Of a stretch of DNA of 64,000 bases, positions 22,332-54,599 are shown one piece after another. The notes beneath the pieces are model-generated. The model did no database searches, was not told where the DNA came from, and saw only the letters and a program-made list of their open reading frames with translations. How positions within the stretch are numbered: position 1 is the first letter of the stretch; each line of letters starts with the position of its first letter. Origin of the DNA: Trichosphaerium sp. ATCC 40318. Taxonomy: Eukaryota; Protista; Tubulinea. A program made the position numbers and the translations under genes. The stretch is taken from positions 443,095 to 507,094 of the forward strand of contig JALMLS010000579.1 of assembly GCA_038496445.1 (NCBI GenBank), written 5' to 3'.

Positions 22332-23141
22332 TCACCTTGTAATTCCTGGATTCAGCCAAACTATACCCAATTCTTCAACAGCCTCTTTTGTTACCCTGGT
22401 GCCGAGTATAGATTTAAGAGAAGTCAAATACGGCAAGCAATCATTTGTTATGTTGGGACAACGTTTGAGTTCTAGACGTTCAAGATTTGTCAAGTTCTTA
22501 AAACCTGAGTTTGTGTAAAGACCTGCAAAAATTCTCAAATCTTTGACATTTGTCAATTTTCTGAGTTTTTCATCTGATCTTCCTCCATAAATACAAACTG
22601 TATGAACATCACTGAGATGGTCAAGCCAACCTGATTTTGGAAAAGATATTGTAATATTATGAACATCCCTAAGAGCTTTTACTCCCTCTAACTCTAAATT
22701 CGGACACCCTCTAATGTTAATGGTGTGTACAGACTTAAGAGCTTTCAAAGACTCATCAGAAATATATGTATAAGCCAATGAAATACTATGAATGCTGTGT
22801 TTTTCTCCACTTCTTAATAAAGCAAGAATTTGCTTGTCGCCAACATTTGTACCTTCTAGGTCTATATTGCGAACTCCAGACAAGCAAGAAATATGTACCT
22901 CTGATAAGGCTATAACCTTGCATTTTATCTGAGTGTTTTTAAGCAACGGACTGCCTTTGAGAATACGACATTCGGAACCTTTTGTTACTTTGAGGGAAAC
23001 AAAGCCGACATTGTAACGAATGATGTTATTGAACAGATGAGAGACTGTAGAAGCAGTAAATCGATGTGTTCTGCTTAAATTACTTAGTATTTGTGTTAAT
23101 GTCTCTGGTGGAAACTGTTCAATCGATAGACGTCGTTTCAT
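22332..23141 (-). CDS. Intronless F-box + LRR protein
   Basis: IEQFPPETLTQILSNLS...ASTVSHLF F-box, and LRRs such as LKSVHTINIRGC and LTNLERLELKRCPNITNDCL. Confidence 0.85.
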   Translation of the reverse strand: MKRRLSIEQFPPETLTQILSNLSRTHRFTASTVSHLFNNIIRYNVGFVSLKVTKGSECRILKGSPLLKNTQIKCKVIALSEVHISCLSGVRNIDLEGTNVGDKQILALLRSGEKHSIHSISLAYTYISDESLKALKSVHTINIRGCPNLELEGVKALRDVHNITISFPKSGWLDHLSDVHTVCIYGGRSDEKLRKLTNVKDLRIFAGLYTNSGFKNLTNLERLELKRCPNITNDCLPYLTSLKSILGTRVTKEAVEELGIVWLNPGITR

Positions 23142-24715: not shown

Positions 24716-26792
24716 TTATGTTTCATTCTTTTTAACAAGTTCATAAGGTTCCCCATCATTGAAGTACCCATACATCATAGAATTACTGTCTTCATCCCAT
24801 ACCATACACGCTCCTTGAAGTACTCCATTTACAAATTGATGTAGCTGTTGTAGTTGTCTATTTTCATACCAACTTTTGCTTACGCCATGCTCTTTACCAT
24901 CAACCCAATTAGATTGGTCCTTAAGTGTACCATTCTCATACCAACTTTTTCTTTCACCGTGCTGTTTACCATCAACCCAATTAGACTGTTCTTGAAGCTT
25001 TCCACTCTCATACCAACTTTTGCTTTCACCATGCTCTTTACCATCAACCCAATTAGACTGGTGCTCAAGTACTCCATTCTCATGCCATGTCTTTCTTTCA
25101 CCTTCCAGCATATTATCTTTGTAGTTTGTTGTAAAACACAATTTTCCATTTTCAAACCAATGTGTAGCTGTCCCAGTAAGTTTACCATTAAGATGAAATG
25201 CATGTAGTTTCAATTGTCCATTTTCATACCACTTTTTGCTTTCGCCATGATTTTTACCATCAACCCAATTAGAATGGCCCTGAAGTGTACCATCGTCATA
25301 CCAACTTTTGCTTTCACCGTGCTCTTTACCATCAGCCCAATTAGACTGGTCTTGAAGTATTCCATTCTCATACCAACATTTACTTTCTCCATGTTGTTTA
25401 CCATCAACCCAATTAAATTGGCCCTGAAGTGCTCCATTCTCATACCAACATTTACTTTCGCCATGCTGTTTACCAACAACCAAATTAGCTTGGCTCTCAA
25501 GTGTACCATCATCATACCAACATTTACTTTCACCATGCTGTTTACCATCAACCCAATTAGACTGTTCCTTTAGTATTCCATTCTTATACCACCTTTTTGC
25601 TTCTCCTTCTTGCTTACCTTTCTTGTAATGAGATTGTTCTCTCAACTCCCCACTGTCATACCACTCTTTACCCTCTCCATCAAGTTCACCGTTACAAAAA
25701 TAACATTGTCGGATCAATTGGCCTGTAGTGTTCCATTCAATGAACTTTCCATGCAACTTGTCATTGACATAAAAAGACTTACTTTCCATTTGTCCATTTG
25801 CATACCATTTTGTTGACTCTCCTTCTAGTTTGCCATCAGCATGAGTAGACAGATCTTGCAGTTGTCCATTGTCATGCCATGATTTGATTATCGATCGTTC
25901 GTTACTACTAGAAATCTGCATTCGCAACTGTCCGTTATCATGCCACTGCTTGAAATCACCTACAAGCAAACCATTACTAAACACACCCTTTCCATCAATC
26001 GATCCATTTTCTTTCCAAGAAATGTGCTCTCCATGTCGTTTACCATCAACAAAATTAATAATTTCTTTCAGTTGGCCGTTTTTGTGCCACACCTTGTAAA
26101 CTCCTTCTTTTTTACCATTGATATTATGACAGAGTGTGTTCAATTGTCCGTTGTCATACCAATGTTTTTCCTCTCCGTTTAGCTTATTGTTTTCGAAATT
26201 TTTTTCCACAGTTAAGTTACCATTTTCGCTCCATACCTTATATAACCCTTCGACTTTTCCATTTACGCACGTGAAAGCTGCACAAAGTTTTCCATTTTTA
26301 TGAAAGTTCTTTTGATCTCCTTCTCGCTTTCCTTTGACAAACTGACGTAGATTTTTTAGTTCTCCATTGTCGTACCACATCTTGGACTCCCCGTCAATCG
26401 AACCCTTATGGTAGTAGCACTGTTTCTCCATATTACCGCCTTTGTAGAATTTCTTGAAAATTCCTTGACCTTTACCATTTTCCCAATGTGCAATACACGT
26501 GATTTGTCGCCTTGAAGTCTCTTCGAAGAATTTTTGTTTTATCCATTTTCCGTGTTTTCTCAGTCTTTCATCAAACCTTGTAGCTGTTGCCGTTTGTTTA
26601 GATAGGAGCGGCCATTTGTTATACACCTCTTCTAGGTCTAGTTCCGCTATTTCATATTGTAAATCGCCAGGAAGGCTTAAAAGGCTTGCTTTGGGTCTAT
26701 GGTGTTCAGAATCCGCGGTGTGTTGCTGTGTTTAGCGTGTTAGCGAATGTTTGTTCATGTTACAATTGGACTACCTCGCGTTTGGATTCCAT
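24716..26792 (-). CDS. F-box-like + MORN2-variant (YwqK-type) repeat protein, about 675 aa
   Basis: Exon 1 MESKRE, 49-nt intron 26726-26774, then LLSLPGDLQYEIAELDLEEVYNKWPLLSK (F-box-like) and more than 20 repeats of WYxNGxL...Y/WxxGxxxG. Confidence 0.85.
24850..25600 (-). repeat. Intragenic 72-bp (24-aa) tandem repeat array, about 10 units
   Basis: accatcaacccaattaga recurs at multiples of 72 bp; unit QSNWVDGKxHGESKxWYENGxLxx. Confidence 0.9.
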
Positions 26793-46586: not shown

Positions 46587-48991
46587 ATGCTTCTCTCAAG
46601 ATTGTTACTCATTCTTGGTACTTTAACGCTCTTTGACGCACTTGCAACACCTTTCGATCTAAACTCGGATAAATGCGATTACTACATCACTCCAACAGGC
46701 AATGATACTCTAGTACGCATAGATATTGTGTTTTAATACTAATGAACGATGTAATAGAACAACGGAACTAAATCATCTCCATATCAAACGTTGATGGGTG
46801 TAACGAACGCCACAGATGATATTTGCCGAAATGCATCAGAAATATGTAGAGTATGCTTCACAGGTACGATGATATCAGCTTTTAAACCCTTTTATTACAC
46901 TCGTGGTTGTGTCGGGGAAAGATCACAAGATAATGCGTAAAACCACCCGTCAATAAAAAGACCAGACGCAAAGGGGTTGTTTGTTCACTGAATTGTTCTG
47001 ACACAGAAACATACTTATTTGAAATCTAATGCAAAACCGATAGGTGGCGCCTACCCACCCGTTACAGGACCGCAATACTGGAACTCTTCAGCTCGAGGAG
47101 AATTGAATGTATTACATTATGATTGGGATAATGTTACACGTTTAGACCAACTTGTAATGAAACGTGTTTCGTACGTTATTTTTTCAAAATGTGTTGTTTG
47201 TTGTTTGTGTGCGAAAACCTAATTCTTGGTAGTACCTTGAAGGTCAACCTCATGCTGCTGCCAACTTCATTGGTTTTTCTGCTGGAGTAGTTGTTAGAAA
47301 TGCCGATATTACATTTTACGAATGGGACTTTAATGAACACCGTCAATGTAATGCTACTTCTTCTTTTTTTCTTCTTTGTTCCCTCCCATCTATTGACCAT
47401 TATCTTCAGTGGAAGCCGGCTTTGCAGTAAATACTACAATTACTTTAACGAACTGTACATTGAATGGTGACGCTGTGAATAATAATAGACTTAAGTCTTT
47501 TTCTATTGAAAGGTCCACGTGGACAAATCCACAACAAGTACAAGGTACAAGTAATGTATTAATTAAAAACACGATTACTAACTTTTGTTGAAGGAACAAG
47601 TTTAACCCTAGATAGCAATGTATTTCATTTTGAACATAATCAAACATTTGAAGTAGTCCTGGCAACATTGAGCTTGACAGTACATGGAAATAATTTCATC
47701 AATTGTAGCCCTGGAACAAAAACGGTAACCTTCAACTAGTCCTTTTTTATCTCAACTGACTAACGCTATCTTTTCAGGCATGCCTTACAATTGATAATGC
47801 TGACGAAATCTTTGAATGGAAATTTACGGATAATACCTTTATCGGTGAAAGGTCCTTTTATTGACTTTCAATATTATTCTCCCGATAATAAGTCAACAAT
47901 CCAAGTATCTAGTAACGCCTTTGGACCTTCAGTATGTTTTGAGACATTGAAACCTTCTTTTCTATTAAAGATTTAGATACCAACTTAGTTCTTAGGAAAG
48001 TACAGTGCTTATACGTTCTTCACAATTGGATGCTACTATTGACACCAAATTGTTTAAAATCTATGATAACACCATTGCCTCAAAACGTAAGATTCGATTC
48101 ACTGACAGTTTTTTTTTCTATCCTTATTGACTGTTCTTTTAGCACGTTGCGCATTAGGATCTGTTTCATACAAGAGTCTCTTTACATGTGAGAACTGTAC
48201 TTCAGGTACTTATTCCAATTCTACAACAGAGACATGTTTGATTTGTGACCCTGGAACAATGAGTCATGCAGGAGCTGGTAAGTGTACTCCTTGTCCTCCA
48301 TGAGAACATCAGGATAAAGCGTATGAAATACCAAACCAGTACAACAAACTGACTTTACCACAAGTGGACAGGGTTTTTGTGTTCCATGTGGGATTAATAT
48401 GTACTCCTCTAAGGATGGAGCAGTAAATTGTACCAAGTGTTCAGCTGGGTCAATCGTTAATACTAAGTCAGATGGATGTAATATGGTACGAAACAATAAT
48501 GCAAACCTCAAACACTTGTACTCATAAATTCAGCAAGTTGTTTTTTTTTTTCGTATTTTTCCACCCAACTTAATATTTTTTTATAGTGCCCAGCTGGACA
48601 GTACGAACTTGTTGGAAAATGCTTCGATTGTGCTGTATTTTCATCAAAGGAAGGTTCTACATCTTGTAAAATACGTACGCTTGCTCTTCTTTTTTGCTAT
48701 GTGTTAGTGTGTTGAATTCACATTTGTGTCACGTGATTTTGTATTTACTTGTTTATTTGTAGTTCCTATTTGGATGTATGTTCTTATTGGTGTATGTGGT
48801 TTGCTTTTATTAGTTGGTATCAGTACGTGAAGTCTTTTTTTTTGCATTTGCTGTTCTTTTTCATACTGCTATTCTCGTTTTTCATTTATTGCTTGTTCAT
48901 TTTGCCTTATCTTCTTTTAGTTATTGCTATTACTGCTATTGCTTTGTTTGCATCCAAAAAAAAGAAGAGATCAGACTATACTACTGTTTAG
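46587..48991 (+). CDS. Type I membrane glycoprotein: beta-helix-like ectodomain, Cys-rich GCC2/3-like repeats, TM helix, YxxV tail
   Basis: Signal MLLSRLLLILGTLTLFDALA; YYITPTGND..NGTKSSPYQT; CDPGTMS, CGINMYS, CSAGSIV and CPAGQY repeats; tail KKKKRSDYTTV*. Confidence 0.75.
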
Positions 48992-49266: not shown

Positions 49267-49992
49267 TCAATGCTCGCTGAGACACGGAATATCACAATTT
49301 CCATGGTTTGTAATAATAGTACTTGATTCACCTTCACTGCTACCGTCAATAACCCGAGCTGGGCCGTTCCAACAAAAATAGTATGAATTATGGATACGAA
49401 CTTCAGAAAACCTCCAACGGTCGTTACCAATAATCTTTACTTCGACACCATATAATCCTCTATGAGGCTCCTGCACTGGTTGATTTCTCAAGTAAAAAAA
49501 ATCACGTGCGCCGACGATAAAATCGTCTTTGTGTGGGTTGTCGATGTTATCACTCCAAGCCGAATTGGATCCATCGTTGTATACGTATCGGTATCTGATA
49601 GGCGAGTCTGAACCGTCACTAGCACCGCTCTCTGTTTGAGTTACAATGAAGGTATCTCCGGTATGTTCTTTGTCATGTTCCTGAGGTCTAATCTTCCTAT
49701 ACAGATCTCCTCTAGTGTCAGTCACCCTCAAATTGCAACTATACTTTAAAAACACATCACAACTACTTCCTCCGTAGCTCCTAAAGAAGCCACAAAGATG
49801 AAGCTCATCGCATATTTTTTGGCACTCTTCTTTAGAAGCAGATGTTGTAAAAAAACACCCTCCTGGATTACTGGAGCAAGGAAAGCACGTGTAATATGAC
49901 CCAATTTTATAACTATAGAAGGCGTTTGTCGCATGGGAGTGCGATAAGTAGATACCAACGAAAATTGAGAATAGTATAGTTGAGACTGTCAT
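49267..49992 (-). CDS. Intronless secreted protein with a PAN/apple-like Cys domain and a PLAT/LH2 domain
   Basis: Signal peptide; EECQKICDELHLCGFF; DGSDSPI...IDNPHKDDFIVGARDFF...GNDRWRFSEVRI PLAT signature. Confidence 0.7.
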   Translation of the reverse strand: MTVSTILFSIFVGIYLSHSHATNAFYSYKIGSYYTCFPCSSNPGGCFFTTSASKEECQKICDELHLCGFFRSYGGSSCDVFLKYSCNLRVTDTRGDLYRKIRPQEHDKEHTGDTFIVTQTESGASDGSDSPIRYRYVYNDGSNSAWSDNIDNPHKDDFIVGARDFFYLRNQPVQEPHRGLYGVEVKIIGNDRWRFSEVRIHNSYYFCWNGPARVIDGSSEGESSTIITNHGNCDIPCLSEH

Positions 49993-50448: not shown

Positions 50449-50797
50449 CTTTTTGCTCCTTCCCAACAAAAATGTGTTTGGCTATTCGAAAGGGTTTTCA
50501 CATAATGCCTTGTTGATGCTATGAGTTCTGGTTAGAGTGCCCTATAGCTGTAACATTTGATCAAAAGGCTCCGGGACTTGATAAAATTTTACTCAATGTT
50601 GCTAACATAAGCTCATGTGATGACTTTATTATAATACACAGCTATTCTACATCACAAGAGCACTTAACCAAAAATTCAATTCTGTACACAACATGCATTT
50701 TGAAATCACCTTTAATACAAGAGTAGCATATACTCACGTTAATGAACTTCGCTACACAAGTATAATGATAAACAATCTTTCATTTTAATAAAAGACG

Positions 50798-53700
50798 TTA
50801 ATCCAACTTGATCATGAACGCAACTAAGAAGAATAAGTCAAGGTAACTTAAGTTGGACTGAAGAGAAAAAAAAGAAAAACAGTCGACTTGAACTACGTAC
50901 TATTCTCAGCAACTTGAGAGGTTACAGACCCCTTAACTTGGAGCCTATCTAATGCACCTCTAACCATAGCACATGTTAACCGTAGAAAGTTATCATGATA
51001 CTTGAAAGGTAAGGTGGCTAATGGAGTGAAGTCCTTTATTTGAAGAATAAAAGCTTGTCCATTACTTATCAATCTATCAACTTTAACACCAAAAATCTTA
51101 ACCCAAAACCTCTATTAATACACAATAAGTACACAAGAACCTAAGGTAATAGTATGACGTACCCTACAAATGAACTTGACAACCTTTATTTTATTACCAA
51201 GCCAGTCATCTGAAACTGTTTTATCCCTTCAAAAACAGTCAACAAAAAAAATCAAAACTCTGTTCATCAAACGCACCCATTTGTAACAGATTTACCAAGG
51301 AGATTACCAAGTTCTTCTGTAGCTTTTACTTGTATACTACCAGTCTTTCTTGAGAGAATATCAAAAGCTTTCTCGATAGCATCAAGACTTAAAGCAGAAC
51401 GTTTAAGTTTTAAGTTCAAAGATTTTTTAGCTGCATCACCGACGACTTCCTATAAGAAAAAATACATTGTAAGTACTCACAAGGGAGCAAGAGATAGAGA
51501 AGATACGAATAAAAGCATACGTCTATGTTTATAGTAGCCATATCATGTACTCTGTTGAATACTTGGAACATTGCATGAGATTCTTTGCTTATTTTACCTT
51601 GAGCTACTAAAGAAGAAGCAAGCGCTCTTTTTGTTTCTAAAAATACAAGCTCCTCCATCTCTGACAGTAATGTATGTGCTTTTTGATGTTTCTCATATAT
51701 GAGATCAATATATGTCTCAAAGTATGCGAGAAATAATTGAGTATCAGCAAATCTATCAAAGAAAAGACGATGACTTGATGGAATATTCAAAATAACATTT
51801 TCCAAAGCCTCTTCGTCTCCAACGCTGTAATAAAACGGTCAGTACTATGATCACCACTAATATAATATTAAAGACGTACTCTAGCTTCTCAGAAGTAGGC
51901 ATGGCATCACTAAAGACAGTGATCAAATCAACAAGATATCCTTCAATAATTTTTGTAATTTGTTTAACAGCTTCGTCTTCCTTTGCTGTACATTTAAAAG
52001 GATGCTTTAGCTTATCATCATGTGTAACAGCATCACATATATTTCTTGTAGGTCTTCTTAACTTCTTAAGAAGATCACTACTATTAGGAAGTATTTTAGA
52101 TACTGTAAAATCACTAGGACATCTACAAGTGTCTTTATCAATATCAACAATGATGTGTTCTGAGAATTGCTCGTATTCGACGATAGAAGGCAGAGATGTA
52201 AGGCCAATTACATATGGTACTAAGTTACCAAGTAAGCAAAACAAACCAGCATTATGAAGAAAGAAAAAACATACCAGGAGCCTCCATACAAGTCTGATAT
52301 TTTTCGCTTTCTGGAAGAATAGGAATAAAAGCTCCTTAAAAAATAACTGTAAGTCATCGTTTAAATTATACATGTCACTAAATACCTTGTATAATAAATG
52401 GTCGAACTGCTGGTATCAACGATAGGCTATACAAGTTAGTTATATCGCAAATAGACAGATATTCGAAGAGAACTTAAGTACGGCCTACCTTATAGCTGAT
52501 AATACACCAGGGTGTTCACTAACCAACAGAATCTGACGTTCAAGTAAAGTTGCAGCCAGAAGAAGCAATACATTGTCCAGGGACAATAACCTAAACATTG
52601 CAGCCATAGCAAACTCTGCTGTTAGTTTACTCTCATCACCAGCCTAGAAAGTGTCAGAACATAGAATTCAACAACACGCTAAAGAGTTCCGTACAGGGCA
52701 TTGAAAGTCTATTGTTAAAAGGTCTCCAGGTAGTTGAAAAGACACACTTTGATCTTCAAGAGGCACTTTCTGATTGTGGTACACGGTTAACGTCTCTTTT
52801 ATGCCATCAAAAAATTCTGTAAAAAAAAAGAAATAAGTTAGTTCATAAAACAATGAAAAAACCAACGTACTGCTCTCTACAGTTCGCTCTGATGTCACTG
52901 CCGCACGTGTACCTTTAAGAGCACGTCTACCAGCGTTTACATCAATAACAAGATATCGTTGTTTTGCTGTAAACAAAGAAATTAGACAAAGCAAACAAAA
53001 AAAAAAAAAGATTATTAAAAAAACTGCGTACCAATAATGCTGTAAAGCACTTCAAAGTGAAGTTTAAAGAATGGAAATCTAGTAATAATACAATAACATC
53101 TAGGAGCAAATTTTGCTGTTTCTTGACGGCTCTTTGCGAACTTTGAACGTAAATAATCAGAAGTCGTTTCGTTTGTTTTTGTTTCTTCACAATCTTGAAT
53201 CATGACAGATGTCACTACGCATATACCATAGTATAACTGTTCTCCTCCTGTAAAAAGAAATACATACGACGAGTCGCTATCTTGATACGCGTTTAAATTC
53301 CCATAGAGTGTCTAGAAAGTCGTTACAACGCTATAGAAAATACAACCAAGTAACATACTTCGTTAATAGCGGTATGAGACGCCGTTTTAGGTACAACCTT
53401 TACATTAAATCCTTTCGGGAAACAGAAATCAATTACGTTCGGTAGAGGCTCCCTACGAAGTATATTAACTACTGAAACAGTGCATTCAAAGATTTTACAT
53501 ACACATCACTGGGAAAATGGTGCCGAATCTTTGGTTCGTCTCCTATGCCAGCGCCAATTATAGTGAAATAATCAAAAAACGATCCTCCACGTTCAGGTGT
53601 AAAAGAATTAGCCAAACAATATTTGGATGATGATTTTAACGCCAGATTGCGTGGGCTCTGTAGTTGTTCGGTCAATTGTGCTTGTATCGCGTCCATGCCG

Positions 53701-53977
53701 TCATAAAATTCTGTTGGTGCCCCAACAGTGTCTACATGATCCAAAACTGTTCTTAGCGTATGTGCGCGGTCTCTTGCCTATTATAAATTAGAATTTGCTG
53801 ACATTTTTAAACTTACGGCAGGGGAGAGCTCAGAAAGGTTCGTTACGCTAAATAATAAGAATGAGCGTATAAAATGTAAAAAAGATTGTCCCACCTTTTA
53901 GAAAAACTCGATTCCGTCTTCAACGCTCTGGAGCGTATGGTAGCCATTGAGGCAATGTCCATAGCGACGTTCGTCAT
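50798..53977 (-). CDS. DENN-domain Rab GEF with an in-frame C-terminal TRAPP Bet3-family (Trs33/TRAPPC6-like) domain
   Basis: uDENN FFDYFTIIG, VIDFCFPKG, YYGICV; cDENN PRCYCIITRFPFF, LLERQILLVSEH, PYVIGL; dDENN FFDRFADTQLF; then KVVKFICRRFWVKIFGVKVDRLISN...LRLTCAMVRGALDRL. The start could be ATG 53977, 53962 or 53947. Confidence 0.88.
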
Positions 53978-54599
53978 CTTTAAAACTTGCCCAAAGTATT
54001 TGTTACTGTTCAGGTGAAATCTGTAAGGTTGTTTTACACGACCCAAGGTGACGTCAAGCTGAAGTGGAGTGTATAGCTAATACAGTCTTTCAATTTCACC
54101 TATGTTGACCGATGTAATAACTCAAAGTTCAAAAAAGCGTCTCAAACGAGTGTATTTCAAGCGATCTATTCGACCATAAAGCGTTTGGTTCCTTTCATTA
54201 GTGGCGAGAGATTTTGACCACATTCACGCTTACTTCCCTCGAGATGCTCCTTGCGCTGTAGCAATGTATATTCAAAAGTTCATGAGGTTGCATGAGTGCT
54301 GGTTCACGTGTTTCGATAAGAAAAAGGATGTTTTGCCTAAAATGATCTACGATACAAATTTGACTCAAACGGGCCATCGTAGTAAACTAACGTCTTTCGC
54401 GTAAGCAATAAGTAAATGCTGTCGTACAGGTATTAACATGCGGTTGAGTTTGAATTTCGTTGTTTTTGAAACGTTACAAGTCACGTGGTATCTAAGGTGT
54501 TTGACGTAAAATTATGGTAAGCTAGTTCAGACAAAAAACCAAATTGGATAGTCCAATATTTTCCTTATTCTTTGTAAAGTAATACTAACAAAAGGCGCA

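Follow-up and report, generated by a model that had tools for sequence, protein, structure and literature searches.

No classes of Rab activators are larger than the TRAPP and DENN proteins, which are regarded as working independently of each other. The TRAPP core is a GEF for Rab1 and Rab11, and the known TRAPPC6 proteins are small, stand-alone subunits of this core. A minus-strand locus in the window (the whole stretch of DNA analysed, 64,000 nucleotides long) raises the question of whether the two classes are joined there in one polypeptide, with a DENN protein leading in frame into a TRAPPC6/Trs33-like module. We consider it reasonably probable that this fused DENN-TRAPPC6 protein of 784 aa is made. 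If real, the architecture would be a new combination of two known Rab-GEF components; no DENN + TRAPPC6/Trs33 fusion was found described in the full-text literature.

Structure of the locus

The gene was modelled by translating the three minus-strand frames over 54100-50700 and reading the splice sites by eye. The model runs from 53977 to 50798 and contains 16 exons and 15 introns (Table 1), which together give a single open frame of 784 codons (2355 nt of coding sequence, from the ATG at 53977 to the TAA at 50800-50798). Residues 1-627 of this frame correspond to the DENN protein and residues 628-784 to the TRAPPC6/Trs33-like module. All the introns are of the GT..AG type and 39-77 nt long, mostly with GTAYGT-type donors and with pyrimidine-rich 3' ends. 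The junction intron, which separates the two halves, is indistinguishable in size and splice sites from the other 14. A sequence-only reading of this DNA had proposed an uninterrupted frame across an ordinary phase-0 intron at 51450-51520; our model arrived at the same coordinates and the same phase, within a 784-codon frame that carries 15 uniform GT-AG introns.

Table 1. Coordinates of the exons, introns and internal start codon of the DENN-TRAPPC6 locus, with the evidence for each.
Feature	Position	Strand	Evidence or remark
DENN part, exons 1-12, residues 1-627	51521..53977	-	Gene model, Pfam DENN, tblastn/blastp to homologues
Exons 1-4	53977-53895, 53847-53817, 53777-53503, 53452-53359	-	DENN part
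Exons 5-8	53311-53032, 52966-52871, 52816-52695, 52643-52489	-	DENN part
Exons 9-12	52426-52386, 52334-52275, 52219-51880, 51824-51521	-	DENN part
In-frame ATG (M621), 7 codons ahead of the junction donor, G at -3 and +4	51539..51541	-	Sequence reading
Junction intron (intron 12), 71 nt, GTATGC...TTATAG, phase 0	51520..51450	-	Sequence reading
Exon 13, linker and N-terminal helices of the TRAPPC6-like module, residues 628-685	51277..51449	-	Gene model
Intron 13, 50 nt, spliced in RNA	51227..51276	-	X1 contig 2 skips 51226-51275, cut +1
Exon 14, ends in KFICR	51163..51226	-	Gene model; covered by RNA contig
Exon 15, TRAPPC6-like core (RFWVKIF ... VTSQVAEN)	50901..51111	-	Pfam TRAPP, PDB match, RNA contig
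Exon 16, last 8 residues (IAFMIKLD) and TAA	50798..50823	-	Splice inferred from frame and resemblance to the TRAPPC6 C-terminus

In the DENN frame, no in-frame stop precedes the donor at 51520. A DENN-only ending of the model frame requires that the junction intron be retained. The frame then stays open through the intron for 23 codons (a chance of ~0.27) and ends at 51418-51416, where the sequence-only reading had already placed an unspliced stop (near 51416), after adding a 34-residue hydrophobic tail. Exon 12 is open over 101 codons in the DENN frame only, for which the chance is ~0.003 at the stop frequency of the window. On the coding strand, neither AATAAA nor ATTAAA occurs from 54000 down to 51196, that is, from the start of the gene to exon 14, and an ATTAAA lies at 50789, 6 nt past the final TAA.

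As had also been claimed, the exon past the junction has no start codon of its own: exons 13 and 14 hold no in-frame ATG, so translation cannot begin downstream of the acceptor. The in-frame ATG at M621, absent from the earlier account, lies upstream of the junction. A start there would yield a stand-alone TRAPPC6-like protein of 164 aa through the same intron, against 152-160 aa for TRAPPC6 chains. M621 is the probable former start codon of a tandem TRAPPC6 gene, and may still be in use as a start.

Three other arrangements around the junction were rejected. A spliced-leader (SL) trans-splice or operon acceptor at 51450 is ruled out by the lack of any ATG past it in these two exons, 13 and 14. 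An ATG within the junction intron is out of frame. An alternative 46-nt intron in exon 12 (~51597-51552), which would lead to a DENN-only stop, begins with an unfavourable GTAAAA donor and lacks a usable branch site.

The spacers flanking the gene appear to be at least 800 nt long, which indicates that overlapping genes are not the local habit. On the minus strand, 805 nt downstream of the gene, lies an ATG-started ORF of 241 aa (49267-49992) with a hydrophobic N-terminus and many cysteines, for which no Pfam family was found. Short open stretches with regularly spaced cysteines (of the C..C..G.Y....C..C type) at 48127-48527 on the plus strand resemble the exons of a repeat protein rich in cysteine. 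Farther away on the minus strand are a 636-aa open frame of MORN_2 repeats (24716-26626; Pfam PF07661, 266 bits), which form a long repeat protein within one exon, in a region that is otherwise rich in introns, and a 269-aa ORF (22332-23141) with an N-terminal F-box and leucine-rich repeats.

Identity of the two halves

Pfam scans were made on single exons. Exon 8 matched the DENN family (PF02141) with 35.1 bits against a cut-off of 23.4, and the last part of exon 5 aligned with the beginning of that profile. Exon 12 gave a dDENN score of 11.5 bits, below the cut-off of 26.8, and no uDENN match was obtained from single exons. Searches of PDB sequences with DENN exons 5, 8 and 11 returned nothing meaningful. 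A metagenome scan with exon 5 retrieved distant homologues at ten loci (~24-60% identity in local tblastn alignments), named L001-L011, with L011 being a 10.5-kb contig that recovers L008 again. Residues 84-462 and 529-614 of the fused protein align to these DENN homologues, whose dDENN is likewise weak. The DENN identity claimed in the sequence-only reading is thus backed by the above-cut-off match of exon 8 and by homologue alignments that reach residue ~614, and the protein is predicted from its domain matches to be a DENN-type Rab GEF.

For the TRAPPC6-like half, exon 15 alone (50902-51111, minus strand) scored 28.1 bits with Pfam TRAPP (PF04051), for which the cut-off is 27, and the match spans positions 64-135 of the 154 in the profile. 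Searched against all solved structures, it matched five sequences with E-values from 1.7e-5 to 1.4e-4: TRAPPC6B (2cfh, 2bjn and 3kxc), fly TRAPPC6 (7b6d) and TRAPPC6A (2j3t). The best match was to residues 72-144 of TRAPPC6B (2cfh_C, E 1.7e-5), and no TRAPPC3 (Bet3) or TRAPPC5 (Trs31) chain was retrieved among PDB sequences at E <= 10. Identity of exon 15 to human TRAPPC6B was 33%, and the ESM Atlas clusters nearest to this exon were all TRAPP. The TRAPPC6/Trs33-like identity proposed earlier is upheld by these results: the Pfam TRAPP cut-off is passed, and the only significant structure matches are TRAPPC6A/B and fly TRAPPC6.

Exons 13 and 14, taken singly, had no Pfam TRAPP match and no meaningful PDB sequence match. 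Positions 2-68 of exon 15 align to residues 72-144 of the 158 of TRAPPC6B. This aligned core is flanked by 80 residues before and ~10 after it in the module, compared with 71 and 14 in TRAPPC6B, a fit of lengths by which the module is predicted to be a whole TRAPPC6-sized unit of ~157 aa. The KFICR/RFW motif spans the exon 14/15 splice; that intron 14 splits this KFIC..FW motif supports the splicing of the intron. When the 70-residue fragment encoded by exon 15 was folded alone, the model was of moderate quality (pLDDT 75, pTM 0.59), and a Foldseek search of PDB with this fragment returned no TRAPP chain and nothing at E < 0.5; a model of such a fragment is no fair measure of the Bet3 alpha/beta-plait fold.

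End of the DENN homology

Only two of the DENN homologues, L002 and L008/L011, reach the 3' end of the gene. In both, dDENN is followed by a charged helical tail of ~110 residues and then by a stop. No TRAPP-like sequence was found in the 2-6 kb downstream of these two DENN genes; in L008/L011, the DENN gene is followed by SET-domain and eIF5-like genes. Compared with these tails by blastp, residues 529-614 of the fused protein aligned with E-values of 6.6e-8 (L008) and 2.8e-7 (L002), and DENN-family homology therefore extends to 13 residues before the junction. The likeness between the last 45-60 residues of the homologues and the start of exon 13 was not significant (shuffle p 0.07-0.09). 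Since the homologous DENN genes end without TRAPP and their last residues have no significant counterpart here, the fusion appears to be lineage-specific, with the TRAPPC6 module replacing the end of the DENN tail. The homologues also carry a low-complexity insert, rich in Ser/Pro or Lys/Glu, between cDENN and dDENN (L002:1724-2554 and L008:1664-2500). It measures at least ~200 residues (~210 in L008 and ~275 in L002) and is not present in the fused protein.

Searches for the same fusion elsewhere, in protein collections that include neither this genome nor close relatives and in metagenomes, returned no relative. An HMMER search with exon 15 against 1.84 billion representatives yielded one spurious repeat protein and no self match, and a metagenome scan with the same exon found no relative. 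Word-indexed protein searches with exons 15 and 12 were blank, a result of little weight given that their length window excludes full-length relatives. The same type of search with the L008 tail returned only that tail itself and one unnamed fragment.

Transcription of the locus

Only one public run (X1), labelled 'RNA?' and with no library type recorded, contains any of this stretch. Aligned to 50700-54100, it provided two error-free contigs that cover 318 nt of TRAPP exons in all. The first covers 50941-51102, within exon 15. The second joins 51163-51225 to 51276-51366, skipping intron 13 with no mismatches and with 63 nt on its shorter side. The TRAPP exons are, therefore, transcribed, and intron 13 is spliced as modelled.

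No X1 contig lies over the junction intron or over any of the ~1.9 kb of DENN coding sequence, at a depth of ~2-4 on the TRAPP exons. Within the TRAPP part, coverage is likewise missing for the 5' 83 nt of exon 13 and at the 3' end of the gene. Given this depth, and gaps in the TRAPP exons too, the missing DENN coverage is weak evidence. The pattern fits either a 3'-biased library or a separate, more abundant TRAPPC6 transcript. Unrelated high-depth X1 contigs, with three mismatches each, fall on a T-run in intron 5 (52993-53024) and do not represent expression of the gene. As for the fused gene put forward in the sequence-only reading, the domain identities and the continuous frame stand, while the X1 contigs lie on the TRAPP exons only and none over the join.

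Fused, separate or dual products

Fusion is the simplest and most economical reading of the locus, because the DENN frame lacks a stop of its own and DENN homology continues to 13 residues before the join. Several further features favour it. A DENN-only product needs the junction intron to be retained, yet a TRAPPC6 transcript needs the same donor and acceptor, as exon 13 is startless. The opening of exon 12 in the DENN frame alone, the absence of AATAAA/ATTAAA before exon 14 together with the ATTAAA just past the final TAA, and the lack of an ATG for an operon or trans-splice reading all point in the same direction. So does the retained-intron tail, which is hydrophobic and unlike the charged helical tails of the DENN homologues (shuffle p 0.63 with L002 and 0.036, a weak match, with L008), as well as the expectation, from the length of the neighbouring spacers, that genes here do not overlap. 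Counted against fusion are the unfused state of the DENN genes in L002 and L008/L011, the failure of the searches to find a relative with the same fusion, the normal TRAPPC6 size of the protein that M621 would give and the absence of an RNA contig over the join. The confidence placed in each alternative was judged separately, one by one.

The alternative that survives best is that the locus has two outputs: a stand-alone TRAPPC6 of 164 aa, started at M621 and transcribed from a promoter in the last DENN exon, with the fusion as a minor or conditional isoform and the short, housekeeping protein as the canonical TRAPP subunit. The confinement of X1 contigs to the TRAPP exons mildly favours such a short transcript, though at a depth of ~2-4 the absent DENN coverage weighs little. 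M621 has G at both -3 and +4 and stands seven codons from the donor, its product matches TRAPPC6 chains in size, and the identity of 33% to human TRAPPC6B in exon 15 is what a true orthologue would commonly show. This arrangement, however, needs a promoter and a 5'UTR inside coding sequence, and it leaves the fused frame of transcripts from the DENN promoter in place. We regard two outputs as possible, but clearly less probable than a fused protein as such.

A further alternative accepts the fusion and places the module outside TRAPP, where it would serve the DENN GEF for dimerisation or membrane targeting, with a canonical TRAPPC6 elsewhere in the genome; it overlaps the main fusion reading. 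The modest Pfam score (28 bits on 70 residues) and the lack of a TRAPP match for exon 13 alone lend it some support, as does the crystallisation of TRAPPC6 as a homodimer. The 33% identity to the human TRAPPC6B core is, however, at the level of an orthologue, and no second TRAPPC6 is known, the sequence looked at being the 64-kb window. We judge this alternative improbable.

Least credible, and in our view highly improbable, is that two genes were wrongly joined, with a DENN mRNA that retains the 71-nt intron, an overlapping TRAPPC6 gene and no fused protein: the open read-through of the intron, the unfused distant DENN homologues and the restriction of RNA to the TRAPP part agree with it, but one transcript would have to use a good donor and acceptor that the other one ignores, the tail added by retention looks like hydrophobic junk, and overlap is unexpected with such spacers.

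Possible origin, consequences and comparison with known systems

Under the preferred reading, that of a fused gene, a DENN-family Rab GEF (uDENN-cDENN-dDENN and a helical tail) would have lost its last ~45-60 residues together with its stop, so that its frame now continues, past a 71-nt phase-0 intron of ordinary form, into a complete module of the TRAPPC6/Trs33 type, from the Bet3 family. Read-through or a deletion between two tandem genes is the likely origin, with apparent retention of the former TRAPPC6 start (M621) and first intron. Alongside the fused mRNA, an internal promoter may also yield a shorter one that encodes TRAPPC6 only.

The C-terminal module may pair with Bet3/TRAPPC3 as TRAPPC6 does, which would tether the DENN GEF to the TRAPP core or to Bet3 and place two Rab-activating activities on one scaffold. 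This docking via Bet3, and the hard-wired Rab cascade that could result from it, we infer from the established pairing of TRAPPC6 with TRAPPC3 (Bet3) and from the N-terminal extension carried by yeast Trs33. It is rather doubtful that the organism has no TRAPPC6 other than this one, permanently tied to a DENN GEF, such that its TRAPP core carries a second, covalent Rab GEF. If true, such a core would be a machine that activates Rabs in two hard-wired steps, or else a new TRAPP variant, and would offer a Rosetta-stone clue to a partnership between DENN proteins and TRAPP in other eukaryotes. A DENN GEF that is naturally fused to a subunit of the TRAPP core would provide genetic evidence that both can share one scaffold. 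It would also single out the DENN subfamily worth testing in model organisms for binding to TRAPP and supply a ready-made system for Rab cascades. If the locus instead produces two nested transcripts, it would be a TRAPPC6 gene that is ordinary but for the unusual place of its promoter.

With the DENN-domain Rab GEFs, the fused protein shares a cDENN above the Pfam cut-off; a dDENN-like segment and the helical tail after it are common to it and the metagenomic homologues L002, L008 and L011. Those homologues finish with ~45-60 residues of charged helix and a stop, whereas the fused protein has the TRAPPC6-like module in that place. The module, in turn, shares with TRAPPC6A/TRAPPC6B (Trs33 in yeast) the Pfam TRAPP domain, the KFIC..FW and TC..RG.L motifs and a length of ~157 aa. 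Unlike a stand-alone TRAPPC6, it has no start codon after the first intron and stands in frame behind 627 DENN residues. Conjoined (read-through) genes and Rosetta-stone fusions of tandem genes are the closest precedents for the arrangement: here too, a complete downstream gene, with its probable start and first intron, lies in frame with the upstream one. In contrast to conjoined genes, however, the upstream DENN gene has no stop of its own, which makes the fused frame obligatory for its transcripts.
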